Shown here piece by piece: positions 8,578-26,250 of a stretch of 64,000 nucleotides of DNA; position 1 is the first letter of the stretch, and each line of letters begins with the position of its first letter. The stretch lies in the sequence record PP496444.1, one strand, 5' to 3'. Position numbers and translations under genes: made by a program. Below the pieces are notes generated by a model. It saw only the letters and a list, made by a program, of their open reading frames with translations, had not been told where the DNA came from and ran no database searches.

Positions 8578-8606
8578 TATACGCACCTATAACCGGACTA
8601 CAGAAT

Positions 8607-8638
8607 AAAAACGGGGAACCAGTTTAAGGGTTCCCCGT
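8607..8638 (-). terminator. intrinsic terminator after the SGNH fibre gene
   Basis: ACGGGGAACC / GGTTCCCCGT hairpin followed by a T run on the - strand. Confidence 0.75.
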
Positions 8639-8658
8639 GGGACTTAGATTTAGGTAGA

Positions 8659-11208
8659 TTAGATCAGGTTTGCTTTACGGATGAAGCAGCAAGGGATGTC
8701 AATGGTCAAGGAAGACGCAATACCTGTGGCCGTGAACATCGGACGGAACTCGATAGCCAGTGAGGCTGGAACCGTAGCTGGAACTGTGTAAGGCGCCGAC
8801 AGGGAAACCCCGGTGAAAGCCTCTACTACGGAAGCAGGCATCATGTTGTCACCACCCAACGACAGACCACCGTATACACGATCTGCTGCAACGTTCGGGT
8901 CGATCATCACGGTCGGAGCCGAGAAGTTCACGTGACCCGCAGCGGCTACAACCTCGTAACCAGCGACCAACACGTCACCCGGCGAGCAACTCGGTGCAAT
9001 GCTTGGGGTACGCAGGCGTACATACGCGTTGGTGGCCGTTGTGGTGCCTGACACGACCATGCGATATGCGCCACGGCCGTCTGCCAGTGTTACAAAGCTA
9101 CCGACTACGGTGAGACCGTTGGACGTGGACAGGGTGTAGTTGGTTGGAACCACACCAGTTGCACCTGCACCCAGCGTACCCGTAGTACCTTGCATCATCG
9201 GGTTGGAGTTGAGGCAACCGCCGGGGTTGGCTACAGCATCGAACAGGTCGCCGTTGGACGATGGCACCCAGTTGGCAGGTGGTACGAACTTGATCAGTTC
9301 CTGTGCACCGAGCTTACCTGTGAGGTAACCGATACCTGGACTGTTGTGCAGGCCGTCTTGGTTGATCATGTTCGGCAGTGGAATGCCTACCAGAGCAGCC
9401 GGATCAACGGCACGAGGCCATACGTCGATGACGGTGATAAGCGGGTCAGCACGCAACGATCTGATCCAGTTAGCGTAACGGTACATCAGCTTGTAGGAAT
9501 CAGACGACATGTAACCTGTGGTGCCTACAACGGTGCCATAACCACGAGGCCATTCAGCGATGATGCAGATCTTCTTGCCCAGATCCTTGAATTTCTGGAT
9601 GATCGCCAGCAAGTCAGACTGCATGCTTGCCAGAGGAATTAGGGAGTTGATGCTGTTGGTGCCGATCAGGATCAGAGCAATGTCGTAACCTGCCGAACTC
9701 GGCTTCATGCCGTAGGCGTTGGCTACGTCACCGATTACTCGGTCTTTCAGGTTGGTAACGCTGTCGCCCGATACGCCAAAGTTGAAAAGGTGGTTACGTA
9801 GGAGCCGACCGTGAGACAGGGTCTGAATCCACCATACTGGACTTCGAGCCAGAGGGGCTGGAACTGTCAAGCTGGCGTACGATTCGTTCTGGTAGGTCCG
9901 GCTGTCACCGAATACGGCAATGGTGCGCTGAGGCGTAGTGAGCCAGCCGGGCAACCCATCTTTGCCGTTCGTGCCATTAGTCCCGTTCGTGCCATTGGTG
10001 ACTGTAGGCGCTATTACCCACGCACCGTTCTTACGTTGATACGCGTTGGTATCCTTTGGTGCATCGAGGAGATAGTTACTCAGGTCTTGAGCAGTGTACG
10101 GCGTCCACGTCTTCCCTACGGCCAGATAGGATTTGCCATCCTCTGGTGCCGATGGCATCAGCCCATCCAGATCTGTTTTGCTTGCCAGATTAGCAATTTC
10201 GGTCTTGGTCGCTGCGGCGGATACGCCCTGACCCAAAGTACTGAGCGAGTTAGCCAGACCGTTGATCGTGTTGATCTCTTGAGTACCCGTGTGAGTACCC
10301 CGGTCACGAAGGCTGGCGTCCGTATCGTTCTTGGTGGCGCCGACGGCAATACCCGTGAGCTTGTCTTTGTCGGCGGTTACGTAGGCGTTGGTGTCCGGGT
10401 TGCTTTCGTACAGGGTCTTAACCTGTGAAGCCGTCAGCGGGGTAGAACTACTGGAACTCAAGATCCACTTGCTGTCCGAAGCGTCCCAGATATACCGGGT
10501 GGCATCCGCGCCCGCAGTGTCTACATCGGCGTAGTTACCTGCAACCGGGTTGGCTACCCCTGCGGTAAGCGCGGACAGCGACGTGAACGTACCTCGGAAC
10601 ATCGGGCCTTCAATCCCGGCCAGCTTGGTCTTCTCCGATTGGGTGAAGTTGGCCTGGGACAGCGAGTAGCCCGTCTGCTTTTCTACCTTGGTGTCCATCA
10701 AGTTCTGCAAGACGGCCCGCACGTAGGCATCGTCATAGTTGAACAGGTTGGCCAGCTTGGTCTTCTGCGCTGCATCGAAATCGTTGGTGGACAACGCCTT
10801 GCCGGGAACAACGGCGACCGCACCGATGTCGGAGGCCTTACTCGGGATATACGGGGCGTCTACCAGATCCTCGAACAATCCGGAAATGGCTACCTTGGCG
10901 AGTCCGGGAACAGTACCTGAACCGCCACCCGATCCATCGCCTGCAGCCACTGCCGCCGCCGTACTGGTACTGATCGAGGGGTCCATAACTCGACGATGGA
11001 ACTCGTCTGCGGTGGCGTAGGAAAGGATAGACTCTTCAGAACAAGCAAGCCAACCCCGTGCTACTTGAGCCCGCAGCATCTCGAAACTTTTCAGTAAGAA
11101 TCTTTCAGTGGGGTAGAAGAACCGACCCTCCGTCAGCGTAGTCCCCTCGATGGATAGTCCCTTCGGGGCGGATGCCGTTCGTTTAAAGCCAATAGATGAT
11201 GCTGCCAT
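8659..11208 (-). CDS. modular fibre/spike protein with foldon-like and collagen-like segments, SGNH hydrolase and C-terminal beta-sandwich
   Basis: Fibre motifs (LAKVAISG..DL, GKALSTNDF..QKTKL, LRDRGTHTGTQ); DAPKDTNAYQRKNGAWV; (GTN)n GKDGLPG; SGNH blocks FGDSRT, GVSG, IGTNS, DGLH. Confidence 0.8.
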   Translation of the reverse strand: MAASSIGFKRTASAPKGLSIEGTTLTEGRFFYPTERFLLKSFEMLRAQVARGWLACSEESILSYATADEFHRRVMDPSISTSTAAAVAAGDGSGGGSGTVPGLAKVAISGLFEDLVDAPYIPSKASDIGAVAVVPGKALSTNDFDAAQKTKLANLFNYDDAYVRAVLQNLMDTKVEKQTGYSLSQANFTQSEKTKLAGIEGPMFRGTFTSLSALTAGVANPVAGNYADVDTAGADATRYIWDASDSKWILSSSSSTPLTASQVKTLYESNPDTNAYVTADKDKLTGIAVGATKNDTDASLRDRGTHTGTQEINTINGLANSLSTLGQGVSAAATKTEIANLASKTDLDGLMPSAPEDGKSYLAVGKTWTPYTAQDLSNYLLDAPKDTNAYQRKNGAWVIAPTVTNGTNGTNGTNGKDGLPGWLTTPQRTIAVFGDSRTYQNESYASLTVPAPLARSPVWWIQTLSHGRLLRNHLFNFGVSGDSVTNLKDRVIGDVANAYGMKPSSAGYDIALILIGTNSINSLIPLASMQSDLLAIIQKFKDLGKKICIIAEWPRGYGTVVGTTGYMSSDSYKLMYRYANWIRSLRADPLITVIDVWPRAVDPAALVGIPLPNMINQDGLHNSPGIGYLTGKLGAQELIKFVPPANWVPSSNGDLFDAVANPGGCLNSNPMMQGTTGTLGAGATGVVPTNYTLSTSNGLTVVGSFVTLADGRGAYRMVVSGTTTATNAYVRLRTPSIAPSCSPGDVLVAGYEVVAAAGHVNFSAPTVMIDPNVAADRVYGGLSLGGDNMMPASVVEAFTGVSLSAPYTVPATVPASLAIEFRPMFTATGIASSLTIDIPCCFIRKANLI

Positions 11209-11344
11209 TATAATCTCCAGTTCGGTCCTAACTGCGTGTATTGTCTATACCACCTTTTATTAGGTGGGACGGAATGCCCGAAAACAAATCTGGGAAATAA
11301 CGTCCGGATTTAACCTGGTATGCGTGTAATTAGGTGGTTCAGAC

Positions 11345-11378
11345 AAATAAAAGCCCGCACGGCTGGGCCAATGCGGGC
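11345..11378 (-). terminator. intrinsic terminator
   Basis: GCCCGCA / TGCGGGC hairpin plus TTTTATTT just after the stop at 11384. Confidence 0.75.
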
Positions 11379-11383
11379 GATTA

Positions 11384-12598
11384 TCATGCAGCAGGTACTG
11401 GGTCCCAGCTCACCTTGAACAACTTGCCGAGGTATTTGACAACCCGGCTGTAGTTCTTGGATTCTTCCATAATGCCGATCACGTAGTTGAGCACGTCACC
11501 GCGAATCTGCGACTGACTCCACGCTTGTGGCACACCTTTCATATAGTCCAGTGCTTTGCCCTGCATCCACTTGGCGCTGACGGCGGAATGCAGCGTCAGG
11601 TTAGTGTTGCCCGTATCGGTCAGCTTGATCGCACCCAAGTCTCGCAGGACCAGTATCAAGGTGTTCATCGACCGGTAACTCGGCAAGTCCATCTTGCGGC
11701 ACACCGCTTGCACCGTGGCGAAGTCGATGTACTCTTTGGGTTTGAACATTTCCGCAGGCTTCGGGTAACCATCGATAGCCTTGAACGGTTCGTAGTACGG
11801 CCCTCTGGTGGGCACTGGTTCCGTTTCTGGTTCCTTGTCCATGGAGCTGACCAGGTCGTCAATCGCTGCCGGGCACATGGGATCTTCGCGCAGTGGCTCG
11901 CTGACGATGGTAGCCAAGACCTTAGGGGTGGTCTCCGCTGGTTCTTTCGCGGACAGTGGCGGCGACGGATCAACGGCCAGCACCGGCTCGGGAACTTCCG
12001 GTTTTGCCGGGGCCACCGGCTTCGCAGGCTGCGTTTTGGGGCGCTTTGTGCGTTTCGCCGGGGATTGTGCCGGTTTCGGGACTTTGTTCAAGGCGGAGCG
12101 TTTTACGGGCTTGCGTGTGGCGAGCATGATGTCAAGCGTGTGCTTGGTCTTTGGACACTCACACGCGTTCATCAGGTCAATGATTGTGCTGATCGGCAGC
12201 ATCATGCTCTCAGCTTGCACATCACCGTCGGGAATCTTGATCGCTTTGTTCTGGCCGGGCTGACGCACCACTTCATAATGCAGCAGGTTATCAGCCAGTC
12301 CCGGAATGTTGGCCCAGTACTCACAGACGGCTTTGATGTCATCGTGAGTCTTAGGCAGTTGAAGAAGATGCTTGCGCAGGGAAGCGCCGGAGTAGTTGAG
12401 CCCGCAAGACTTTAGTGCCGAAGCAATCTGCTCGAACGAGGCGCCATACGTACGCATCCTGACAATACCCGGTAATGCCTTGTCCAACAACAACTGTACT
12501 TCTTTTCTTACCTTACGCGGACCATCGTAGTCGTAGTCTTCTGCCAGCTTTAGGAACTGGTCAAGATCGAACTGTGGTTTATCAGTTGTGTCTTTCAT
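11384..12598 (-). CDS. hypothetical protein; N-terminal helix-turn-helix-like region, Pro/Lys-rich linker
   Basis: GASFEQIASALKSCGLNYSGASLRKHL is HTH-like; 404-aa ORF. Confidence 0.75.
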   Translation of the reverse strand: MKDTTDKPQFDLDQFLKLAEDYDYDGPRKVRKEVQLLLDKALPGIVRMRTYGASFEQIASALKSCGLNYSGASLRKHLLQLPKTHDDIKAVCEYWANIPGLADNLLHYEVVRQPGQNKAIKIPDGDVQAESMMLPISTIIDLMNACECPKTKHTLDIMLATRKPVKRSALNKVPKPAQSPAKRTKRPKTQPAKPVAPAKPEVPEPVLAVDPSPPLSAKEPAETTPKVLATIVSEPLREDPMCPAAIDDLVSSMDKEPETEPVPTRGPYYEPFKAIDGYPKPAEMFKPKEYIDFATVQAVCRKMDLPSYRSMNTLILVLRDLGAIKLTDTGNTNLTLHSAVSAKWMQGKALDYMKGVPQAWSQSQIRGDVLNYVIGIMEESKNYSRVVKYLGKLFKVSWDPVPAA

Positions 12599-12698
12599 TT
12601 AGGGTAGTCTCAATGTGGGGAGGAACCTACCCTCTCCATTATACGTGTGGGTGAAAGAGTGGCCTACGCATTGCAGGTCCACCCCGGTTGCTTCGGTG

Positions 12699-12986
12699 TT
12701 AATCGACTCGTACGTTGACGACGGTTACGCCTTCGTATTCCTTCAATCGTTCTATGAAGGTAGATGCTATCTCTTCGGTGGGCACGAAGAGCATATCACG
12801 GGCCACAGTTTCCACCGCGAAGAAGTTGGCATCCGTTTGTACCGAAAGGACCGAAGCCCCTGACATAGAAGACCGATGGGTACTCGCTTCTGTGCCTACA
12901 TCTACGGTAGTGCGAAGCGTGACGCTATACATCTTTGTCACTACGCCTTGTTCCGGCTCAAGTCTCCCAGCTGGCTTATCATTCAT
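12699..12986 (-). CDS. hypothetical protein (95 aa)
   Basis: ORF track 12699..13091; ATG 12986 overlaps the recA end. Confidence 0.6.
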   Translation of the reverse strand: MNDKPAGRLEPEQGVVTKMYSVTLRTTVDVGTEASTHRSSMSGASVLSVQTDANFFAVETVARDMLFVPTEEIASTFIERLKEYEGVTVVNVRVD

Positions 12987-14538
12987 CTTCTTCCACTTCC
13001 TCTTCTTCCTCGTCCAACCCAGCGCCGGACAAGTGGTTGAAATACAACTCCAGGCCACGACCCGAAGAAATCTGAGCGGCCAGCACTTCACGGATGTCGA
13101 AGTCTTTAACTTCCCATTCCGCCGTCAGTTCCTTGCGCGCCTTGCCTTTGAACAGGACCAGTTGTTTAAGGTCCTCCCACGTCAAGTCCAGCTCAGGGAT
13201 AGACTTGCTGTCGGCATGCAGCGTGAAAGACTTCATGTTGCCGGACAGCTGGCCGGTCATACGCAGGTAGTACCACGTGTCCCAGACCGGATCGAAACCA
13301 CGACCTTTACCAGTGGCGTCGCTGATCCACAAGCGCTGCCAGATTTCAAGGTTGTCAACCCCGTACTTGTTCTTGATCGCCTTCATGTTGATGAAGCGAT
13401 AAGTGTCTGTACCGGACGCACCTACGCTTGGTTCTTCCATCGTGGCGCCAGTGGCCGAGATGAAGTCCGGGCAGGATCGAGGGGTCTGCATGATCCGTGC
13501 ACCGGTGGCGTGCTTGATCGCCATGCCGCCAGGTTCATAGTTCGGGTTGCCCATTCGCATGCCCGGATTCTGACGGATCTGGTTGATCGACACCACGGTC
13601 GCCATCTTCTTACGGAGTCGGCCCCACACCTTCTTGATGTGCTTGGAGTGCATACGTGCATCCAGAGCCATACCCCGGCTACCGTCACCGTCTTCCCCTT
13701 CGTCTTCCTCGGTGGTCATCGAGGCAATGGAGTCGAGCAGGATAAGGCACTGCATCATGCCGCCGTTGGGCGACTTCATCCGCAGCTTGCCTTTGTAGAC
13801 GGTGTACTTGCCCTTGAACTTGCTCATGTTCTCTTTGGTGCGGTCATACAGCAGATACCACTCGCCGTTGATATGCACCTTGTCGGGCAGCTTTTTCAGG
13901 ATCGACGACATAACCTTGTAGAACTTCTCGCCCGACGATTCGTTGTAGTAACGAACGCGAGGTGGAACGACGTAGTTGCCTTTGTCGTCCTTCACGCCGA
14001 ACATACGCTTCATGCTGATCTTGATGCCTTGAGCTTCGAGCATGTTGACGATGTAGTCTTCGGCACCGGTGTTCTCATAGTCCCACCAAAAGGACATTGG
14101 AACGCCAGCCAAACAGATGGAACCCAACCACGACATCAGGTTGGTGGACTTGCCCGAGCCTTCCGGCCCTGAGAAGTTGTACCAGCCGCCGGGATAGATA
14201 CCACCCGCCAGCATTAGGTCGGTGCACAGCATCCCCGTGGACACTCGCCCTTCCCGGAGGATCTCCAAGTCCGATACACCTTGGACGATGTTGAAGTGTT
14301 CCTCCACCTCGTCGATCATGGCGGTGACGCCCATCATCTCAAGGATTTCGTCTACCATGTCTTCGCGGGACTTGGCAGGTGGTTCAGCTTTTGCAGCAGA
14401 TGCTTTGCTGGCCCCACGCTTGGCGGGTACCTTGGCATCCTCGATCAGCTTCTCCGCGAGGGCACTGACCTTTTTCTTGGCGGCTACTGTCGCCGTCTTG
14501 ACGGGTTTCGGCTTAGCTTTGGTAGTGGCTGCTGCCAT
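12979..14538 (-). CDS. recA: RecA/UvsX-family recombinase with basic N-terminal and acidic C-terminal extensions
   Basis: VSTG..DL.L.GG; Walker A GPEGSGKST; Walker B ILLDSIASM; ALDAR; INQIR; GG.AIK. Confidence 0.92.
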   Translation of the reverse strand: MAAATTKAKPKPVKTATVAAKKKVSALAEKLIEDAKVPAKRGASKASAAKAEPPAKSREDMVDEILEMMGVTAMIDEVEEHFNIVQGVSDLEILREGRVSTGMLCTDLMLAGGIYPGGWYNFSGPEGSGKSTNLMSWLGSICLAGVPMSFWWDYENTGAEDYIVNMLEAQGIKISMKRMFGVKDDKGNYVVPPRVRYYNESSGEKFYKVMSSILKKLPDKVHINGEWYLLYDRTKENMSKFKGKYTVYKGKLRMKSPNGGMMQCLILLDSIASMTTEEDEGEDGDGSRGMALDARMHSKHIKKVWGRLRKKMATVVSINQIRQNPGMRMGNPNYEPGGMAIKHATGARIMQTPRSCPDFISATGATMEEPSVGASGTDTYRFINMKAIKNKYGVDNLEIWQRLWISDATGKGRGFDPVWDTWYYLRMTGQLSGNMKSFTLHADSKSIPELDLTWEDLKQLVLFKGKARKELTAEWEVKDFDIREVLAAQISSGRGLELYFNHLSGAGLDEEEEEVEEDE

Positions 14539-14561
14539 GGAGATGTACCTGCGTCGTAAAT

Positions 14562-14603
14562 AAAAAATGGGGCACCGACCAGCGAACCGGCAGATGCCCC
14601 ATT
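14562..14603 (-). terminator. intrinsic terminator
   Basis: AATGGGGCA / TGCCCCATT hairpin followed by TTTTTT on the - strand. Confidence 0.8.
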
Positions 14604-14619
14604 AGGGTTGCGCAACAAA

Positions 14620-14796
14620 TCACCTGGATGACTTGCGGCGCTTCGCTTTGACCGTACTCACCGCCTTAAAGCCGGGCTTATTGTAGTCCGGTCTGGCATC
14701 GGCGGCGAGGTTGAACAACCCCCCGCTGCTCGGGTCAAAGCCTTTGGCGGATCGGCTTTTCGGCTTACCGCCGCCGACCTTACCGCCGGCCTGCAG
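14620..14796 (-). other. 58-codon in-frame open extension after the TGA of the acidic protein (candidate readthrough segment)
   Basis: Hand translation LQAGGKVGGGKPKSRSAKGFDPSSGGLFNLAADARPDYNKPGFKAVSTVKAKRRKSSR*; no convincing own start; ends just before the terminator. Confidence 0.5.
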
Positions 14797-15606
14797 TCAC
14801 TCGATGTCGAGATCGATTTTCAGCTTTTTGGCCGCTTTGAGGATCTTGTCCTTACCGGCTTCGACAACCTTCTCGGCGATGGCGTCGGTGTCGTCTTTCT
14901 TGCCGATGGTGATCTTCAGCGCTTTGGCCAGCGACTTGAGTTCGTCTTCGTCGAGTTCTTCGAGGGCGTCTTGGAGTTCTTCTTCCTCCTCCTCTTCCTC
15001 CTCGTTTTCTTCCTCTTCTTCCTCGGACTCCTCGCCCAGTTCGATGTCCAGCTCTTCAGCTGCGTCACGAACGTCGTCTTCGTCTTCTTCGAGCAGCTTC
15101 TCGATGATGGCCGCTTCGTCGTCCTTCTTGCTGAGCTTGATTTCAAGCTCTTTGGCCAGCTTTTTCAGGTCGCCGATGTCGAGTTCTTCGAGTTCGGCTT
15201 CGAGGTCGCCTTCCTCTTTCTCCTCTTCTTCCTCCTCCTCGTCTTTTTCTTCTTCCTCTTCCTCGGACTCCTCCAGTTCGAGTTCGATGTCCAACGCGTC
15301 AGCCGCGTCTTCGATTTCGTCCTGCGTCGCGCCTTCGGCCAGCGCTTCGGCCATGGCTTCTTCGTCAGCGCCCTTGGCGAACTTGACCTTAAGCTTTTTG
15401 CCCAGCTGTTTCAGTTCGTCTTCTTCCAGCTCGGCCAGCGCTTCGATCAAGGCTTCCTTGTCGTCGCCGCCGTCTTTTTCATCACCGCCGTCTTCATCGA
15501 GCTCTTCAGCCAGCTCGATGATTTCCTTGAACGCCGCCTTGGCTTTCTTGTCCTTGGTTGCTTCCATTGCTTCTTCGGCCAGTTCAACGATTTTTTCAAC
15601 AGACAT
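14797..15606 (-). CDS. hyper-acidic protein with three Rho-N/HeH-like repeats
   Basis: ALAELEEDELKQLGKKLKV / ELEELDIGDLKKLAKELEI / ALEELDEDELKSLAKALKI separated by poly-E tracts; SD GAGGA. Confidence 0.85.
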   Translation of the reverse strand: MSVEKIVELAEEAMEATKDKKAKAAFKEIIELAEELDEDGGDEKDGGDDKEALIEALAELEEDELKQLGKKLKVKFAKGADEEAMAEALAEGATQDEIEDAADALDIELELEESEEEEEEKDEEEEEEEKEEGDLEAELEELDIGDLKKLAKELEIKLSKKDDEAAIIEKLLEEDEDDVRDAAEELDIELGEESEEEEEENEEEEEEEEELQDALEELDEDELKSLAKALKITIGKKDDTDAIAEKVVEAGKDKILKAAKKLKIDLDIE

Positions 15607-15704
15607 GATACATCCTCATTACTGGTAGGGTGCCAACTAAGGCTCTTTAATCAACGGGGCGCCTTTTGGCTCACCCCGTTATATGAATGATTTACAGCGG
15701 TTCT

Positions 15705-16787
15705 TCAGCGACGACTTGAACGCGTGGATCTTGTCGAAGTTTTCTCTTTGTCGCGGCTGGTACGGCTGCTGCGTTCCGACCGGCTCGACGTTGATTTACC
15801 GGACTTCTCCGGCTTGTCAGCTTTCGCAGTCTTTTCGCGGCGGGAAGTACGCTCCGGCTTCTCTTCACGGCTGCTGCGCTTGCTGCCTCGCAGTGGACGA
15901 TCCGATTCACGTTTACGCTTGCTGCCCCGGTCGAGATCCTTACCGGCTTTCCCTTCCTCTTCCTCGACTTCCTCAGCATCAGGAGCCTTGGATTCCAAAC
16001 TTGCCACTTCCTTTACAGCATCTGCATAGGACATTGGCTGGTCGAGGTTGCCGAGGATGTCCCACTGCAGATACTTCTGCTCGGTACGGCTCAGCGGGGT
16101 ATGGCCTGTGCTGGAGTCCAGCTGCACGTCATACATATCCGACGCCGACTTCGCGTCTTTGTCGTACGACACCAGCAGGTCACGACCGAACTCGGGATCA
16201 CCCAGCGGCATGATCTGCACGCCCTGCTTGGTTTTCACCTTGTTAGTGTCTTCCAGCTTCTTGATCTTGCCAGCGATGCGGTCAGTAACCCGCATGACGC
16301 GAACCGGGGTCCACGAGGCGCTGTTGATGTTGTCCACGAAGCCGGTCTTCTTCTCGTTGGCCGAGTGTTCTGGGACGCGCTTCGGCTCGCTGTCTTGCAG
16401 TTCCCGCACAATTACCGGTACGTAGTAGTACTTCTTGGTCTGCTTGGGGTTGCTGATATCAGCGAACGGGCATTCGATGGTGGTGTCGAAGGTATCCGCG
16501 TCCCGGTCGAAGTTCAACGGGGTATGCGAGATATTGAACTCACCCTTCGGTGTAACGATCTGGATCGCATACACCACCTCTGGAATCGGATCACCGACGA
16601 TACGCACAGCGATGAAAGCACCACCTGGCGGGTATTCCAGCATCTTCACTTTCTTGTTGAAGTACACCCGCTTGCCGCCGGTCTGGCCAGCATTGGTCGC
16701 ACCGAAACCTTTACGAGCCGGGGCAGCACCAACGCTACCACCTCCGCCAGTACGGGTACGACCTGTTCTTGCACTGTCACGTGCCAT
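15705..16787 (-). CDS. gp32-like single-stranded DNA-binding protein with Arg/Ser/Lys-rich C-terminal tail
   Basis: AVRIVG..; CPF; YYVPVIVR; LGDPEFGRDLLVSYDK..MYDV resembles the gp32-like D.TDPE.GRD....YD pattern; near recA. Confidence 0.65.
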   Translation of the reverse strand: MARDSARTGRTRTGGGGSVGAAPARKGFGATNAGQTGGKRVYFNKKVKMLEYPPGGAFIAVRIVGDPIPEVVYAIQIVTPKGEFNISHTPLNFDRDADTFDTTIECPFADISNPKQTKKYYYVPVIVRELQDSEPKRVPEHSANEKKTGFVDNINSASWTPVRVMRVTDRIAGKIKKLEDTNKVKTKQGVQIMPLGDPEFGRDLLVSYDKDAKSASDMYDVQLDSSTGHTPLSRTEQKYLQWDILGNLDQPMSYADAVKEVASLESKAPDAEEVEEEEGKAGKDLDRGSKRKRESDRPLRGSKRSSREEKPERTSRREKTAKADKPEKSGKSTSSRSERSSRTSRDKEKTSTRSTRSSRR

Positions 16788-16819
16788 GGGACATCCTCTT
16801 TCGGTTAGCTTACATCCCG

Positions 16820-16826
16820 TATTTAC
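16820..16826 (-). promoter_or_regulatory. candidate phage promoter motif GTAAATA (also 21713-19, 26294-300, 57362-68)
   Basis: Same 7-mer 32-69 nt upstream of four - strand starts. Confidence 0.4.
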
Positions 16827-16846
16827 AGGATCTGATTTGGGGTGGA

Positions 16847-17356
16847 TTATTTCGGATCTGAAACTGGCTGCATATCCATCAATTTACCGGACACCAGTAC
16901 AAACACCTCAAGGAAAGCGCGGGTGACCACGTTCTTCTTGCGCTGGGACTCTTGAATCTGCAGCATGGAGTGGAAGACGGCTTCCCGCAACGACGCCGAG
17001 TTACTAAGAGCAGCGTCGAAATACTCGGTAAGAGCCATACCCTCCAGAATCTTGAACGGAATACCCGTGGCCTTCCATTCAACGGGCAGGATCATGGAGT
17101 CTTTGTCGCCCATATAATTAGGCCAGCCCGACTTACCCAGATTGGGAACGTACACCGAAGCGGCATCCAGACCGGACTTGCCAATCTCGGACAGCACACG
17201 ATCCACCTGCATGTCGAACCACGCCCGCAGCGTAGGGTCCATGGCCTCGAACTGGGCAAGGCTCATGGTGGACAGGATCACCGGGGTCAGCGCTGTCTCG
17301 TTCGTGAACACCGGCAGTTCTTTATCGAACGGTGAGCTCTCGTCAGGATTGAACAT
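16847..17356 (-). CDS. hypothetical protein (169 aa)
   Basis: ORF in a co-oriented run, overlapping the upstream gene end. Confidence 0.7.
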   Translation of the reverse strand: MFNPDESSPFDKELPVFTNETALTPVILSTMSLAQFEAMDPTLRAWFDMQVDRVLSEIGKSGLDAASVYVPNLGKSGWPNYMGDKDSMILPVEWKATGIPFKILEGMALTEYFDAALSNSASLREAVFHSMLQIQESQRKKNVVTRAFLEVFVLVSGKLMDMQPVSDPK

Positions 17357-17891
17357 CGGTATCCACCTTAGACGCGCGGACTAACTGTTTGGTCCAGTTG
17401 TCCATGGTGAATGTAGCAGGTTTGTCCGCTTCCGACTTGATCACGTCGAGCAGGCCTTTACGTTCCAACCACGTCTCGAAAGCAGTGATGGCAGGGCTCG
17501 CTTCATGGTGGGAGCTGAGAGTGGTAACTTCGTCACGGCTGGTCAGATAGCCGAGAAAGTCAAGGATCGCCATCTGCACCAGTTCGGAATTGAACAGTGC
17601 CTGATCCGGGTGTGGCTGGTAGTTCTTACTGAAAATGGTCTGTCCAGTGGCTACGAAGTGGGCGGTATCGCCTGCCAGTTCTTGTTGTAGGCGGACCAGT
17701 CCGTCCAGTCCTGCATAACCTGGGTGTTCGGCGGCTTGTGCAGCGGAATCAATAGCGGTCTTGACGGCTGCATGTTGATCTGGAGTCAGTTCCTCCACTT
17801 TGGCGTATGCGACGCCCGTGGTGTTCAGCTGCTTGATCTGATCTTCGGTCAGTTGCGCGCCCATGGATGGATAGTCTTTCTTATCAGTCAT
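17343..17891 (-). CDS. hypothetical protein
   Basis: ORF track 17343..17945; start moved to ATG 17891 (MTDKKDY) behind GAGGC. Confidence 0.7.
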   Translation of the reverse strand: MTDKKDYPSMGAQLTEDQIKQLNTTGVAYAKVEELTPDQHAAVKTAIDSAAQAAEHPGYAGLDGLVRLQQELAGDTAHFVATGQTIFSKNYQPHPDQALFNSELVQMAILDFLGYLTSRDEVTTLSSHHEASPAITAFETWLERKGLLDVIKSEADKPATFTMDNWTKQLVRASKVDTDVQS

Positions 17892-17962
17892 GTCAGATGC
17901 CTCATTAGGATAGGAACACCAGATGTCGTACAGTGGTGTGTGCATGGTAATCGGCCTTATGT

Positions 17963-18922
17963 TCAGTCCAAGTTGAATGCTGATCTAGCGTAACCAACCG
18001 GGTCTGCGTACACGCATAGCTGGTAGATGCGGTCCGTGCTGTTCTGCTCCACGATAGCTTCTTCGTAAGACGGAACCGAAACCTCTTCCACCGAAGGGTC
18101 GTCCATTCCCGTGTACAGATTGGTTTGGCCTTCACCCTCTACTGCCTCCACACTCGGGACGTAGTACGCCAGCCCCAGATAGTGGTTGAATTCGTTGCTG
18201 GTCTTCGCATCCTTTACCCAAAACTCAAGGTAGGATGTGAATGTACCCTTGCTGACCTTGTACTTGTTGATCGCCCGCAAGGTGGCCAGCATGTAGTTCT
18301 GGGCCATGTCGCTGATATCCACCTTGACCGAGGACACCGTGACTTCCTTGCGCACCTTGGAGAACAACCAGCGGCTGTACTTCTTGGCGATCAGCTTGCG
18401 CAACTCATTGGCCAGACCGTACCACATGATCACCTGACGGCGTGCAGCCCATAGATCTCGGTGGCCGGTGTAGCGCACGCTGGCTTCAATCTCCGACTTG
18501 CGGCGCACCAGCGTATGGTAGTTCGCCTTGGTGGCGGATGCCAGTTCAAGGCACACACCGTCATACTCAGTCGTCCGGTCAAGGAACGCCTCGATGATGG
18601 CGTGGTACATGGTTCTTTCCAGCTGCATGTCAAAGAACAGCGTCAGCTTTTCCTGTGGATCTTTCACCGACAGGAACCCGGCCATCAGGGATACAACGTC
18701 ACCCCGTGAGAAGGAGGACAGCTTGCGGCGCTTGTTCATCATCTGCCACGACATGGTAGTGGCAACCACCTCGTCGGCAATCAGCGTGGTTTGGAAGATG
18801 ACCAGTAGTGCCCGGCCAATGAGATCATCGAGTAGGCCGAACATCTGTGCACTGGTCAGAGTGAGGTCGTATGGATTGTTAGACTTCATCCAGCCCATTA
18901 CGTCCTGAGGTTGACCGGCCAT
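17963..18922 (-). CDS. phage sigma-70-like transcription factor
   Basis: DISDMAQNYMLATLRAINKYKVSKGTFTSYLEFWVKDA matches sigma region 2 (EDL.QEG..GL..A..KFD..KG..FSTYA.WWI); no clear region 4. Confidence 0.75.
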   Translation of the reverse strand: MAGQPQDVMGWMKSNNPYDLTLTSAQMFGLLDDLIGRALLVIFQTTLIADEVVATTMSWQMMNKRRKLSSFSRGDVVSLMAGFLSVKDPQEKLTLFFDMQLERTMYHAIIEAFLDRTTEYDGVCLELASATKANYHTLVRRKSEIEASVRYTGHRDLWAARRQVIMWYGLANELRKLIAKKYSRWLFSKVRKEVTVSSVKVDISDMAQNYMLATLRAINKYKVSKGTFTSYLEFWVKDAKTSNEFNHYLGLAYYVPSVEAVEGEGQTNLYTGMDDPSVEEVSVPSYEEAIVEQNSTDRIYQLCVYADPVGYARSAFNLD

Positions 18923-18925
18923 GAC

Positions 18926-19615
18926 CTACTCCTTACCTAGAGGCCCGGAAAGTTCGAGCCGGATGGCATCAGTATGCTTTGTGTCTTCGGGGGTCAGTGG
19001 CTTACCGTCTACGGCGTCATCATATCGACGAACTGCCAAGGTCATACGGGTGCCCGTTTCCCCGCTCTCATACCAGAAATCTTCTGAGTCAACCCACTGA
19101 TACACGTACTTGCCTTCGGAAATACCGAAGTCCTCGATGTTCTCCTTGATTCGTTCCAAGGTGATACGAGTGTGCATTGCCTTGTGGTTGTTCAGCCACA
19201 GAGTGCGTGCTTCGTAATCCACATAGGCCGTCATCTCGGGGATGTTATGCCGATGGTGTAGGTCAACTTTCCACCCGATGGCAGTAAGCACCTCTTCCAT
19301 CTGCCAGATCAAGTCAGTGTTTTCACCAGCACTGCCGGGGTGGGACTTCATCTCCGTTTCAAATTCCTTGGAGATGCGCTTACGGCGATCGGCCTTGCTT
19401 TCAAACTCAACAACGTTGGTCTTAACAAGTCTAGCGCTGATGCAGCTGAGAGTGTATGAGCAGTTAGGATCACCACCTTCTCGGAGACACAGGCCATGAG
19501 CTGCTTGCTTCCGGGCTGAGAGTTCATCATCAGCTTCAACAACACCCAGATCGCGTTTGTCAGGGTGGTCCATGCCTTGAACCATGTGATAGAACTTTAC
19601 CTTGTACTGCGGCAT
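18926..19615 (-). CDS. hypothetical protein
   Basis: ORF track 18926..19669; ATG 19615 follows the SWIM gene stop. Confidence 0.7.
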   Translation of the reverse strand: MPQYKVKFYHMVQGMDHPDKRDLGVVEADDELSARKQAAHGLCLREGGDPNCSYTLSCISARLVKTNVVEFESKADRRKRISKEFETEMKSHPGSAGENTDLIWQMEEVLTAIGWKVDLHHRHNIPEMTAYVDYEARTLWLNNHKAMHTRITLERIKENIEDFGISEGKYVYQWVDSEDFWYESGETGTRMTLAVRRYDDAVDGKPLTPEDTKHTDAIRLELSGPLGKE

Positions 19616-19617
19616 GA

Positions 19618-20070
19618 TCAGTATCCTTTGGCCTTGATAGCCATAAGCAGTCGCAAGACGTGCTTGCATACCAGTGGGACCATTGAGGCGTTCTTGACGA
19701 TGGGCTTCTCACCGTTGGAGTACACGATGTCGGCGGCACCCACACGGAACAAGGCTACTTCCCACGTGAAGCAATGGTCTTCGCAGTCGCACTCCACCTT
19801 GATACCCGCAGCCCGTGACATCTTGGTAGCCCGATCCAGTGCAGTGATCTTCACCCGGCGCTTCTGAGGATTGGTGTTGATCCGGGTGCGGCGGCTCTTG
19901 GCCGTACACTCCACGACGTAGTTACCTTCCTTGTCCACGGTGCGCTTCGGGGAATACAGGCGAACGTCACGGCTGCGCTCATACGTGTAAGGCATGTAGC
20001 GCACGGTTTCGTTGATCAGCTTCTTGAGGGGCAATCCCTTCTTACTTTTTTGCTTTACTACGCTCGCCAT
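19618..20070 (-). CDS. SWIM-type zinc-finger protein
   Basis: VECDCEDHCF...LVCKHV (CxC..CxH); start moved to ATG 20070 (MASVVKQK). Confidence 0.7.
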   Translation of the reverse strand: MASVVKQKSKKGLPLKKLINETVRYMPYTYERSRDVRLYSPKRTVDKEGNYVVECTAKSRRTRINTNPQKRRVKITALDRATKMSRAAGIKVECDCEDHCFTWEVALFRVGAADIVYSNGEKPIVKNASMVPLVCKHVLRLLMAIKAKGY

Positions 20071-21643
20071 CGCTCTGCTTCCTTCTCTTGGCAACCCGGT
20101 CCCGTGCTTCCTTGGAAGCCTTCGAGCCACGTTTGGTTGAAGTACTGGATGCCTTAGTGTGACCCTTCGGTGCACCGGTCTTGGACTTCACGCCGTGCTT
20201 GACCTTGGCTACCGTGTCGGACTCGTAGCGCTCCAGAATGCTGGTGATACGATCGCGTGCATCTTCCTCGGTGATTTCCGGGACAGGATTGCCTGCCTCA
20301 TCCAGCACTTGCGCTTCCGGGACCGAGGCGAACAGGGAGGATGCCTTGCCCGGCCCGGACGTTGGTAGTGTGTTCAGGAAGAAGGAGTACTTGTTCCGGG
20401 TGGCATCGTAACCTACATCCACCACGCTGTCGATCAGATCGTACAGCTTCATCGACTCACCCTTGCCGCCGCGTGTCTTCAAGTGACCGTTGACCACCTC
20501 ACGCACTTCCTTGTCGGTAGAGTTCATGATGATCTCGGTCATCGATGTCACAATCCGGTTGTAGGTGTACATGTTGTGGTAGGCCAGCAGGAAGGTGGCC
20601 ACGTTGCCGCCGATCACGCTGAGAACGTCGGTGTACTTGATCGCGGTACACACCGGGCAGTTGCACGGCAGATGGTTGAACGGGCTCGGGTAGTTCACCT
20701 TGTCGAACATCTTGAAGAAGCCCGGCGGGGTGCTGATGTGCTCTTGGAAGTAGTAGCCCTTGGATACCGATTCCTGCAACCACGTCGAGGCGTCACTGGT
20801 GATCAGCGGTGCCAAACCTTTCTTCGCCATGTAGATCAGCGGATACACCAGCGAGAGCTTGGCAACGCCGAGCATGTGATACTGCTCGTATTTGCGCCCG
20901 GTCACCATCTGCTGGATGATCTTGGCGATGGCCGTCATCTGGGTATCGTAATACGTACCACCCATGGCCAGACGAGTGATGTCGTCGCGCTCTACCAGTT
21001 CCCGATAGCGGCTCACTTCTTCCTGCGTGTTACCGTGGAAGATGTTCATCAGCTCCAGACTGGGGCGCTTGTTCTGCATCATCAGTTCGGTGTTCGCCGC
21101 CTGCACTCGGCCCAAGCGCTGATACAGCTCTGGGTCGTTGAAGTGCATCGGGATATCCAGCACGATACCGATGTCTGCGTTGTTGTTGTACCACTGGATG
21201 ATCTCCATCGGGTCTAGGTAGTCGAGACGACCCATACCGAGTTGGAAACCCCCGGAGTCCGCGACGATGTGCCGGGACTTTTCTGCGAAGGTGGTCACGT
21301 CACCCTTGCGAGTGTTGTGAGAGATGCTGTCTTTGTTGATGTGCTGAGTGTAGTTGACCATGTACTGGCTGACGCCCATGTCTCCGGCGGTCAGATCGTC
21401 AAACGCACTCATGTGGTACATCTCGTCGAACGAACCATCAGCCCAGCGGGTAGAGACCGCATGGTGAGTGTTGGACACGATGAACAGATCACGGTCGGGA
21501 CACTTGAGGAAGATGTGGTTGCCGCCGATTTCCACTAAGTCGATCTTGTTGGGGTTCTTGGCGTAACGGACGTATACCGAAATGCCTCCATGCGCGGGAT
21601 AGAACACTCCAGCAGGCACCAGTTTGAATTGACCAGGCGTCAC
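20042..21643 (-). CDS. tRNA-guanine transglycosylase superfamily protein (TGT/DpdA-like)
   Basis: DSGGFQ, LDIP, AMGG, HMLG, SDASTW and zinc site PCNCPVC..HN; GTG start with SD AGGAG. Confidence 0.85.
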   Translation of the reverse strand: MTPGQFKLVPAGVFYPAHGGISVYVRYAKNPNKIDLVEIGGNHIFLKCPDRDLFIVSNTHHAVSTRWADGSFDEMYHMSAFDDLTAGDMGVSQYMVNYTQHINKDSISHNTRKGDVTTFAEKSRHIVADSGGFQLGMGRLDYLDPMEIIQWYNNNADIGIVLDIPMHFNDPELYQRLGRVQAANTELMMQNKRPSLELMNIFHGNTQEEVSRYRELVERDDITRLAMGGTYYDTQMTAIAKIIQQMVTGRKYEQYHMLGVAKLSLVYPLIYMAKKGLAPLITSDASTWLQESVSKGYYFQEHISTPPGFFKMFDKVNYPSPFNHLPCNCPVCTAIKYTDVLSVIGGNVATFLLAYHNMYTYNRIVTSMTEIIMNSTDKEVREVVNGHLKTRGGKGESMKLYDLIDSVVDVGYDATRNKYSFFLNTLPTSGPGKASSLFASVPEAQVLDEAGNPVPEITEEDARDRITSILERYESDTVAKVKHGVKSKTGAPKGHTKASSTSTKRGSKASKEARDRVAKRRKQSDGERSKAKK

Positions 21644-21667
21644 TGCGCGTACTCCTATGTAAGGGTT

Positions 21668-21702
21668 AAAAACCCGCGTCCCAGTTTCCCAGAACGCGGG
21701 TT
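21668..21702 (-). terminator. intrinsic terminator
   Basis: AACCCGCGT / ACGCGGGTT hairpin plus TTTTT on the - strand. Confidence 0.75.
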
Positions 21703-21736
21703 GGTTACACGCTATTTACAGGCGTGCTGGCCCTAC

Positions 21737-22306
21737 TTACTTCGAGTCTTCCTTGTTTTGCTTCTTCGCTTCCTTTTCCGCAGCGTCGGAATCAGCCTTG
21801 GTGAAGATCGCTTGGATCAGGTGAGCGGCCGCACGTGGGTTGTGGCTGTTGCGTTCCAGAATCGTGCGGATCTCTTGCAGGCTGGCACCGGCGCCCGACT
21901 TGCCGGACGTGGACTTCGCGCCTTCGTCGTGAGCATTGATCTGGACGGCGTGCAGTTCGTCCTTGGTCAGCAGGGTCAGGCCGTTGGCTTCAACGTAGCG
22001 GTCTACGACCAGCTTCGTATCGGACTCGGACAGGTTCTCCGGGTTGAACGACTTGATCTGTTCGTTGCCGACTTGACCTTCCACGTCGGAACCGATCACG
22101 TTGTCAGCCTTGGCCAGGTCTTCCGGGGTGGCTTTGTCCTTCGCAGCCGCTTGACCTGCGCCGCCGGTATCGACCGCGCTCAGATCAGACGAAGTGGAGG
22201 GCGTAGGCTTGGCCGGGGTTTCAGGCTTGGCCGCTTCCTTGACTTCCGGGGTCGCTTTGGTTTTGGTCTTGTCTTCGGCAGCAGGTTTCGAGGATTTAGC
22301 AGTCAT
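21737..22306 (-). CDS. hypothetical protein, Ala/Lys/Pro-rich N-terminus
   Basis: ORF track 21737..22339; ATG 22306 behind AGGAGA. Confidence 0.8.
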   Translation of the reverse strand: MTAKSSKPAAEDKTKTKATPEVKEAAKPETPAKPTPSTSSDLSAVDTGGAGQAAAKDKATPEDLAKADNVIGSDVEGQVGNEQIKSFNPENLSESDTKLVVDRYVEANGLTLLTKDELHAVQINAHDEGAKSTSGKSGAGASLQEIRTILERNSHNPRAAAHLIQAIFTKADSDAAEKEAKKQNKEDSK

Positions 22307-23503: not shown

Positions 23504-23791
23504 TTAAAGGCGGGCAGCGAGTAGTTCGCAGAACTGCTGCACGGTTAGATACTGGGCCTCGGACTGCTTGACCAGTTCGCTGACCAACTTATCTGGCACA
23601 TCACAATCAATGCCTTCGTAGTCCTCCAGTGACATGGCAAACTCTACCCAGTCCAGCGAGTCAAGGCCCATATCGATAACCAGTGTGTCTGGCTGGGCCA
23701 TGTAAGGAGCGGTATTAACGTTCAACCTCGGTGTGGGTAGTGCATGCAGGCATTGGATGACCGCAGATGTGACAACATTGACGTGAAGCAT
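23504..23791 (-). CDS. acpP: acyl carrier protein
   Basis: DMGLDSLDWVEFAMSLED (phosphopantetheine Ser in GLDSL) and C-terminal TVQQF..LL. Confidence 0.8.
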   Translation of the reverse strand: MLHVNVVTSAVIQCLHALPTPRLNVNTAPYMAQPDTLVIDMGLDSLDWVEFAMSLEDYEGIDCDVPDKLVSELVKQSEAQYLTVQQFCELLAARL

Positions 23792-25149: not shown

Positions 25150-26250
25150 CTAGAGGTTGCGGACATTAATGAGATTGCCACTGGATGCGGCGACTAACAT
25201 GGTCTTGGTCAGGCCGCGCTTGCTAAAGCACAAATCGTCTTCGGCCAGCGGGCATGTGAAATAATCATTCTTCATGATCTCGTCGTGATCCGCCTTGCAA
25301 TGGCAGGGACGCAACTTTTCGATCTTGTCGAATGTGGTCAACAATGCTGATTTACTGCGAACTTTCAACAAGTCCCTCCAGAGCTCCCATCCCAGCTCAT
25401 ATTCTGCCATGAGTTTACGCAGCTGGCGCTTCTCTTTATCTGGCAGGATATCGCCCACAATAACGCGGCGGTGGAAGTTGTCTCGGGTGATGTAGATCAG
25501 CATCCATCCTTCAATGGTGATGTTGTGCATCATCTCAAGCAGCACGATGTACGACTTGATCTGCGGCACGTTGGCTTTGGCCGGGAACACGCCACCTTCT
25601 TTCTGATGCTTCATAACCTTGTAGCTGGACGTGGTCTTGTAGTCGATCACGTAGTACTTGCCGTCGAGCCAGAGCAGCCCGTCGGTGTGGCCGGTGATGT
25701 TCTTGCCGTACGTAACGGCCAGCTCTTCATAGCGGAAGAACTTGTGTCCACACTTGACGCACTTGCCGGGATGGGGCGAGAATTCGTGGTTGTGTTTACA
25801 CTTCTTGCAGTAGTAGTCACCAACGATGGCCCGCTTGAGGCCTTTCATAAAGCGCTGGCGACTCAGCTTCTTCTTCGTGGCTTGGTCAAGGATCTTGGCG
25901 TTGCGGCGTGCCGAATCTCCCATGGCGAATGGGGTCAGGCTGACGGCGTGCTGGAACGTCTCGTGCACCGCCGTACCAATGGACGTATAAAAGCCGCCGC
26001 CGACTACCTCTTCCTCGCGTTCCATGACCAGACCGCTTTCCAGCGTGGCAATGGCGTGATAGATCGGGCAGAACGGAAAGGAGCTGGGGTGCAGGTCCAT
26101 CACCCGTGTTTCAGACATATGGCGAACGTCCGTGACTTTGCACGCCTCCGCCATGATGCGTTCCATCTCCTTGAGCGCGTCAGCCATCGGTCCTGATGCA
26201 ACCTGATGCTTACTCACTAACCCGATGTTTGCTTTTCCGAAACCTTTCAT
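25150..26250 (-). CDS. Cas4-like PD-(D/E)XK exonuclease with inserted zinc ribbon
   Basis: HPSSFPFCP, GTAVHE, TGHTDG, IDYKT, QIKSY; C-terminal PCHC..CPL; internal CKKC..CVKC. Confidence 0.85.
   Translation of the reverse strand: MKGFGKANIGLVSKHQVASGPMADALKEMERIMAEACKVTDVRHMSETRVMDLHPSSFPFCPIYHAIATLESGLVMEREEEVVGGGFYTSIGTAVHETFQHAVSLTPFAMGDSARRNAKILDQATKKKLSRQRFMKGLKRAIVGDYYCKKCKHNHEFSPHPGKCVKCGHKFFRYEELAVTYGKNITGHTDGLLWLDGKYYVIDYKTTSSYKVMKHQKEGGVFPAKANVPQIKSYIVLLEMMHNITIEGWMLIYITRDNFHRRVIVGDILPDKEKRQLRKLMAEYELGWELWRDLLKVRSKSALLTTFDKIEKLRPCHCKADHDEIMKNDYFTCPLAEDDLCFSKRGLTKTMLVAASSGNLINVRNL

Follow-up and report, generated by a model that had tools for sequence, protein, structure and literature searches.

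A probable DpdA-type DNA-guanine transglycosylase of an archaeosine-TGT-like subfamily in the Pseudomonas putida jumbo phage vB_PpuM-Peetri

The window analysed in this work, a stretch of 64,000 nucleotides, corresponds exactly to bases 62001-126000 of sequence record PP496444.1, the genome of Pseudomonas phage vB_PpuM-Peetri (hereafter Peetri), a 200,264-bp jumbo myovirus of the CEPEST collection that infects P. putida. Positions given below are those of the window unless the record is named. An open reading frame (ORF) on the minus strand, between positions 20042 and 21643, encodes a DpdA-like protein of 533 amino acids with a GTG start and the fold of a tRNA-guanine transglycosylase (TGT), which is probably a transglycosylase acting on DNA. 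The ORF is genuine, and every motif named in the original prediction, which was made from the letters of the window, is present in its place. The corresponding GenBank entry, Peetri_00102, is a hypothetical protein of 456 amino acids starting at Met78, and it omits 77 conserved N-terminal residues (21413-21643, minus strand). In an alignment of 43 family sequences, residues 1-77 were kept in relatives down to 30% identity. The sequence AGGAG, read as a ribosome-binding site (21652-21656, minus strand), lies 8 nt 5' of the GTG codon, and a terminator-like hairpin (21666-21702, minus strand; 14-bp stem, 4-nt loop, U5) is located between the upstream gene and the coding sequence. The hairpin has a folding energy of -23.8 kcal/mol (z -5.1), and none of 200 shuffled sequences folded equally well. 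Because the N-terminus is conserved, the AGGAG sequence precedes the GTG codon by 8 nt and the hairpin separates the upstream gene, the 533-residue form is likely to be the real protein, and the Peetri_00102 annotation is probably truncated at the N-terminus. The entry Aura_00103 of a sister phage is likewise 456 amino acids long and probably carries the same truncation. The paper describing the CEPEST collection does not mention queuosine, deazaguanine or phage DNA modification.

The family of the protein was determined by profile and structure comparison, since the sequence similarities were too remote for a dependable tree. The Pfam profile PF01702 (TGT) was passed narrowly, with 32.4 bits against a cut-off of 26.3 (E 6.9e-8), and the scores for TIGR00449 (NCBIfam TGT; 27.7, cut-off 47.6), TIGR00432 (archaeosine TgtA equivalog; 36.6, cut-off 350) and TIGR00430 (bacterial Tgt equivalog; 16.1, cut-off 306.75) were below the thresholds. 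The search of PHROGs returned only a weak match to a family of unknown function and hence no PHROG assignment, and no PADLOC model matched the protein. Neither PF23859 (bacterial DpdA), which was also absent from the Pfam scan at E <= 1, nor PF20314 (DUF6610, DpdA4), for which the HVTV-1 control matched at E 2.9e-58, had a match in the Peetri genome. An AlphaFold2 model, for which the family alignment served as input, reached a predicted local distance difference test score (pLDDT) of 85.5 and a predicted template modelling score (pTM) of 0.83. In a Foldseek search against the PDB, all 42 matches at E <= 0.001 were TGTs or bacterial DpdA. The VIA-align comparison with archaeosine TGT gave a Z score of 22.7 over 310 residues (4.0 A, 17% identity), and those with human TGT and Zymomonas TGT gave 22.0 and about 21.4, with 300-319 residues aligned across the archaeal, bacterial and human enzymes. 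The family profile, searched against the PDB, matched archaeosine TGT with 48 bits (E 7e-12), whereas bacterial DpdA (7UI4, E 2.2e-4) and bacterial TGT (E 2.5e-4) each reached about 23 bits. Thus, the Pfam score and the fold matches with Z scores of 21-23 bear out the predicted membership of the TGT superfamily, and the profile scores bear out its predicted archaeal-TGT-like character.

The alignment of the 43 sequences, with a mean column identity of 31%, contained 18 invariant columns, and these covered every residue to which the original prediction had pointed. The motifs DSGGFQ (residues 129-134; 21242-21259), LDIP (residues 162-165; 21149-21160), HMLG (residues 256-259; 20867-20878) and SDAS (residues 283-286; 20786-20797), all on the minus strand, and the CxCxxC..H motif are therefore not chance resemblances. 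The residues found in 43 of 43 sequences include D129, S130, G131, G132, Q134, D163, H203, G204, H256, L258, G259, D284, C327, C329, C332 and H356. The last four form the zinc site CNCPVC..H, of the type CxCx2Cx23H (20576-20665, minus strand), which lines up with the archaeosine TGT zinc motif. The catalytic TIM barrel occupies residues ~120-392 (20468-21286, minus strand), as delimited by the invariant columns, the alignments and the 310-residue structural match. With the residue roles described for bacterial DpdA (PMC10164549) used for assignment, D129, D163 and D284 correspond to Asp95, Asp130 and Asp256, respectively, and the family-invariant pair H203-G204 aligns with His181-Gly182, where archaeosine TGT has Gln in place of the His. 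From this alignment, D129 is proposed as the general acid/base, D163 and H203 as residues of base recognition, and D284 as the nucleophile.

The N-terminal region, residues 1-100 (21344-21643, minus strand), is beta-rich, with seven strands modelled at a pLDDT of about 90, and is conserved in the family; P10, A11, G20, P49, D50, R51 and D73 are present in at least 90% of the 43 sequences. An N-terminal extension of about 110 residues had been predicted. The long conserved N-terminus was found, and its predicted size was not, since the catalytic Asp is residue 129 in the Peetri protein and residue 95 in archaeosine TGT, which leaves only about 34 additional residues. Because the structural alignment begins at residue 1 of the model, against TGT residues 11-20, the region resembles the usual TGT segment and appears, in the model, to be in large part an enlarged version of it. 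On the other side of the barrel, residues 393-533 were modelled as helices and disordered basic stretches. The basic C-terminal tail that had been predicted is real: residues 483-533 (20045-20197, minus strand) are rich in Lys and Arg and partly predicted as a long helix (501-532), the last 50 residues carry a net charge of +14, and the tail charge across the family has a median of +11, reaching at least +5 in 37 of 43 members. This tail presumably holds the enzyme on nucleic acid. A Pfam scan of the whole protein, in which the tail was neither folded nor searched separately, detected no PUA domain or other second match.

Homologues were found by tblastn in eight sister P. putida phages (97% identity), the Vibrio phages GR7B and GR11A (50-52%), Xanthomonas/Erwinia jumbo phages (35%), Phage NCTB (30%), Burkholderia phage BCSR5 (22%) and Achromobacter phage Motura (28%, partial). 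A word-indexed protein search returned 51 relatives, mainly metagenome proteins, of which several are encoded on contigs 127-231 kb long, and a single-protein scan of genome contigs, which is sensitive to close relatives only, returned none. In the neighbourhoods of these relatives, the family gene was repeatedly found beside genes of 7-deazaguanine synthesis. The gene order in Motura is queC, an asnB-like gene, the family gene, one further gene, queE, one further gene and folE; in BCSR5 the family gene is followed by one further gene and queE, with folE four short genes further on. On a 177-kb metagenome contig, a PTPS gene and several others precede the family gene, which is followed by one further gene, a radical-SAM enzyme gene and a FolE gene, and a second metagenome contig carries QueC, ATP-grasp, QueC and FolE genes, a gene of 62 codons and the family gene in this order. 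The two QueC paralogues of the second contig pair one-to-one with two QueC-like proteins of Peetri (E 1e-14 and 5e-8), which ties the distant QueC cluster of Peetri to the transglycosylase. A scan of IMG/VR identified at least 332 viral relatives. Genes of the pathway lay in the flanks of 43 of the best 80 loci (FolE 42, QueE 29, QueD 7, QueC 1) and, at the family level, FolE, QueE, QueD or QueC genes lay in the flanks of five of eight; these are raw counts without a background control, and many of the loci lacking such genes have shortened flanks.

The QueC match of the Xanthomonas phage PhiXhv-15 (PV764602.1, 107423-108058) lies within an open frame of 521 codons and may represent a fusion such as Gat-QueC. 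No QueC was found in BCSR5 (MW460245.1) at E <= 0.001, though QueE and FolE adjoin its family member. Because of the possible fusion in the former and the missing QueC match in the latter, the Peetri family seems to be paired with differing pathway end-points.

Searches for QueC, PTPS and FolE placed every match in the Peetri record outside bases 62001-126000, which agrees with the earlier observation that no Que genes are visible within the window. When the rest of the genome was searched, as had been suggested, FolE was found at record 194991-195731 (E 2e-39), together with a QueE-like radical-SAM enzyme at 192054-193025, a tandem QueD-like protein of 369 amino acids with two PTPS/QueD-like stretches at 17389-18498, and the two QueC-like proteins at 158005-158829 and 159637-160455. 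The predicted dependence on preQ0 or preQ1 from the host is thus not upheld, as the same genome codes for these proteins itself. The alternative that preQ1 is the inserted base loses ground as well, because the search for QueF gave nothing in Peetri, GR7B, NCTB and PhiXhv-15 and only a sub-threshold match in Motura. The Pfam TGT matches in the genome were confined to the 20042-21643 ORF. A second transglycosylase was sought without success by the DUF6610 and Pfam DpdA models and by tblastn with DpdA1-4 representatives (best E 0.26), and the ORF is the only transglycosylase candidate detectable in the Peetri genome. The sole ARAGORN call in the whole genome, an 81-nt tRNA-Gly(GCC) at record 8353-8433, lies inside the coding sequence 7175-9379 and is probably a false positive.

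The family was then compared with the named DpdA subfamilies through representatives, namely 9g gp03 for DpdA1, the 459-residue ORF product of KVP40 for DpdA2, the DUF6610 protein of HVTV-1 for DpdA4, and phiST gp042 and the 264-residue ORF product of CP220 for DpdA3. The last two were chosen by their position between the 7-carboxy-7-deazaguanine (CDG) genes and the polymerase gene, their length and a weak DUF6610 match. Among all of these, the family profile detected only DpdA2, weakly and over the barrel core only (24.8 bits), and hhalign aligned the family with KVP40 DpdA2 at 94.8% probability (E 5e-8, 179 barrel columns). For DpdA1, the family profile had no match in the phage 9g genome and the hhalign probability was 17.7%; for the DpdA3 proteins (about 260 residues) it was about 1%, with a Foldseek E value of 2.7e-3 to the phiST protein, and for DpdA4 it was 1.6%. 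When a viral structure library was ranked against the model, family members came first, followed by unnamed viral proteins and the 464-residue protein of Vibrio phage nt-1 (E 9e-9), which is taken to be the DpdA2 of that phage, with phiST far lower. By these comparisons, the phage subfamily nearest to the Peetri family is DpdA2, and the remote homology is real.

The likeness to DpdA2 of nt-1, VH7D and KVP40 comprises the motifs DSGGxQ, DIGM..D.IP, HxLGV and SxDSST, and both groups are carried by large phages with FolE, QueD, QueE and QueC. The DpdA2 members assayed so far insert preQ0 or preQ1 into DNA (Hutinet 2019; Cui 2023). The KVP40 protein differs in lacking a CxCxxC motif and in carrying Gln at the position of His203 of the Peetri family, whose conserved N-terminal region moreover remained unaligned to DpdA2. 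The CxCxxC motif was present in six of six named members of the Peetri family and in none of the DpdA1-4 representatives tested. Phage NCTB, which carries a member of the family, was listed in Supplementary Data 1 of Hutinet 2019 with FolE, QueD, QueE and QueC but with neither DpdA nor DpdA2, and the family was therefore unrecognised in 2019.

With archaeosine TGT (TgtA, PDB 1IQ8/1J2B), the Peetri protein has the motifs DSGxFQ, LDIP, HxxG, D(S/A)S and CxCPVC..H in common; unlike that enzyme, it has no Pfam PUA match, has His for Gln in the base pocket, and is viral, occurring in genomes that lack a convincing tRNA gene. With bacterial DpdA of Salmonella Montevideo (7UI4) it shares the TGT fold, the three invariant Asp residues and, at the Watson-Crick edge, the His-Gly pair, together with a comparable zinc site (CxCx2Cx22H in the bacterial enzyme), whereas the match between the two was weak (E 2.2e-4; Foldseek rank 29). 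Bacterial DpdA acts on DNA, has no N-terminal lid and requires the DpdB ATPase (PMC10164549). The Motura protein annotated as tRNA guanine transglycosylase (QDH83434) belongs, as a distant member, to the same family and is matched by the profile over its full length at E 2e-67. It differs in its 28% identity, in the position of its gene inside a compact queC/asnB/queE/folE cluster and in the lack of the small CxC..CxH neighbour described below.

The Peetri gene thus probably encodes a DpdA-type DNA-guanine transglycosylase of an uncharacterised, archaeosine-TGT-like subfamily of jumbo phages. DNA is favoured as the substrate because the phage encodes its own pathway, the family has the His of the bacterial DpdA type and a basic tail, and neither a Pfam PUA match nor a convincing phage tRNA gene was found. 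DNA base exchange, which the original prediction had offered beside tRNA remodelling, accordingly stands as the best-supported function, backed by the phage's own pathway and by the gene context of its relatives; the host-derived precursor that had been part of it falls away, and tRNA remodelling is the less likely of the two. The functional idea is not new, since Iyer et al. 2021 (PMC7824862) predicted, by comparing genomes, that Motura and a small number of other jumbo phages possess a system of deazaguanine synthesis whose transglycosylase incorporates the base into DNA. It is also reported that all phages known to contain 7-deazaguanines in DNA now have identified transglycosylases (PMC10516641).

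Several observations weigh against this interpretation. By profile, the nearest enzyme is the tRNA-modifying archaeosine TGT and not bacterial DpdA, the VIA-align Z scores of the tRNA TGTs are effectively tied, and the N-terminal segment and the zinc motif are two retained features of the tRNA-TGT type. The QueC-, QueD- and QueE-like proteins of Peetri score far under the curated equivalog cut-offs, and the pathway product is therefore uncertain. Their genes are dispersed at distances of 60-110 kb from the transglycosylase gene, so that the local context in Peetri itself lends no support; a comparable dispersal was seen in Vibrio phage GR7B. Finally, the literature yielded neither a biochemical test of a subfamily member nor a nucleoside analysis of a carrier phage.

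Some of these points are what a tRNA-guanine transglycosylase would lead one to expect, that is, an enzyme placing a phage-made deazaguanine in the tRNAs of the host and thereby retuning translation during infection; the position would be G15, as for archaeosine TGT, or G34, as for Tgt. The closest sequence and structure match is archaeosine TGT, and the protein has kept an N-terminal segment and a zinc site of the kind seen in tRNA TGTs. Nevertheless, such a role is rather unlikely: the protein ends in a basic, partly disordered tail and has no Pfam PUA match, the scores for the TgtA and Tgt equivalogs fall far below their cut-offs, the substrate-binding Gln is replaced by His as in bacterial DpdA, and ARAGORN made no convincing tRNA call in the phage. 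A documented phage TGT homologue that acts on tRNA was not found, and those that have been assayed insert the base into DNA. The host, in addition, has its own Tgt. It is highly unlikely that the enzyme has another target or mode of action, such as modification of phage transcripts, use against host DNA as a weapon, or base excision without insertion. Binding by the basic tail would extend to any nucleic acid, but the full catalytic set for base exchange and the co-occurrence with deazaguanine synthesis genes favour insertion, and we know of no precedent for any of these roles in the TGT fold. A degenerate, non-catalytic protein with a structural or regulatory role, which the low Pfam and NCBIfam scores and the missing PHROG assignment might suggest, is extremely improbable, as homologues at 22-50% identity all keep the same residue in 18 columns, among them those of every catalytic and zinc residue, which indicates purifying selection on catalysis.

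If the Peetri protein is a DpdA-type enzyme, the pathway would start with the action of FolE on GTP, followed by the tandem QueD-like protein; the QueE-like radical-SAM enzyme would yield CDG, and one or both of the QueC-like enzymes would convert it to preQ0 or a related base. After replication, the transglycosylase would flip guanines out of the double-stranded phage DNA and exchange them for the phage-made base by the double-displacement mechanism of TGTs. In this reaction D284 would attack C1' to give an intermediate in which enzyme and DNA are covalently joined, and D129 would serve as general acid/base, with a structural role for the Cys3His zinc site and with the basic tail retaining the enzyme on DNA. 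Phage DNA altered in this way would be protected against restriction enzymes of the host and against other defences aimed at DNA.

The two QueC-like genes of Peetri belong to a block of 12 genes between the helicase and topoisomerase II genes (record 156530-169987; positions 8531-21988 of the locus as extracted, L008). The order in the block is a ligase-like gene, the first QueC-like gene, one further gene, the second QueC-like gene, three unknowns, a PurD-like ATP-grasp gene (694 amino acids), two unknowns, a weak methyltransferase-like gene and a KamA-family 2,3-aminomutase gene. The aminomutase passed TIGR00238 with 267.6 bits against a cut-off of 199.2. In Vibrio phage GR7B, the aminomutase, the ATP-grasp protein, the protein following it and the ligase-like protein are kept. 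The block may be a hypermodification module, and its target might be a base other than a deazaguanine, since radical-SAM isomerases are also found in phage thymidine hypermodification.

On this basis a more specific version of the DNA-modifying role is tentatively put forward as possible, namely that the Peetri family constitutes a sixth, zinc-site-bearing DpdA lineage which installs an undescribed hypermodified 7-deazaguanine made by the conserved module, either as a base or by elaboration on the DNA. The proposed module would consist of the two QueC paralogues, the PurD-like ATP-grasp ligase, the KamA-family radical-SAM enzyme (lysine/arginine/glutamate 2,3-aminomutase-like) and the weak, sub-threshold methyltransferase-like protein. 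One possible product would be a beta-amino-acid amide of CDG, and the CxC..CxH neighbour of the transglycosylase might be a DNA-targeting subunit.

This neighbour is a small basic protein of 150 amino acids with a CxC...CxH motif (19618-20070, minus strand), whose gene overlaps the 3' end of the transglycosylase coding sequence by 29 nt. Its homologues lie directly downstream of the family gene in GR7B (46% identity, E 6e-38), PhiXhv-15 and NCTB, and none was found in Motura, BCSR5 or the metagenome contig L035. The protein had no Pfam, NCBIfam or PADLOC match and is a possible partner of the transglycosylase. Its identity as a SWIM zinc finger, considered from the motif alone with no Pfam match, is not claimed.

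Other genes of the window were inspected as well. An acyl-carrier-protein-like gene (23504-23791, minus strand; 95 amino acids) scored exactly at the Pfam cut-off for PP-binding, and an annotated acpP is syntenic in GR7B. The gene annotated as a CRISPR/Cas system associated protein (25150-26250, minus strand) encodes a PD-(D/E)XK nuclease (E 5.8e-9), and it is syntenic with the primase and transglycosylase genes in the Xanthomonas phage and metagenome relatives. On the metagenome contigs L035 and L036, which share with Peetri a backbone running from primase through sigma to RecA, a methyltransferase gene, a glycosyltransferase-like gene and a gene for a NAD-dependent epimerase (11437-15366) lie downstream of the family member.

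A further large group of proteins was noticed among the IMG/VR loci (L057-L128). They are about 480-530 amino acids long and carry the motifs GDSGGFQIGKG, MILDIP, LQG, HFLGTS and FDCAS without a zinc motif, and FolE and QueE genes often lie 3-9 kb downstream. Against the Peetri family these proteins score about 50 bits, whereas at E 1e-3 none of the representatives from KVP40, 9g, phiST/CP220 and HVTV-1 is matched. The group may form a further lineage, either unnamed or related to DpdA2.

What is new here is the assignment of a hypothetical and truncated Peetri annotation to a family, the delimitation of that family against representatives of DpdA1-4, its distinguishing features, and its link to the two-QueC/ATP-grasp module. 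The modification of DNA with 7-deazaguanines is an established counter-defence of phages, with DpdA enzymes regarded as its signature. The Peetri family widens this signature to a branch that is missed by the current DpdA1-4, bacterial DpdA, PHROG and PADLOC models and whose members are mostly labelled in GenBank as hypothetical, TGT domain-containing or tRNA guanine transglycosylase. It is spread over jumbo phages of Pseudomonas, Vibrio, Xanthomonas/Erwinia, Burkholderia and Achromobacter and dozens of metagenomic contigs. Modified DNA affects restriction mapping and sequencing as well as the host range and defence sensitivity of biocontrol phages, for which the Xanthomonas relatives are candidates. 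The module of two QueC proteins, ATP-grasp protein and aminomutase may point to a new DNA base, which would raise the value of the finding if true. As the family has kept ancestral features of tRNA TGTs, it may inform how DNA-modifying enzymes arose from tRNA enzymes.

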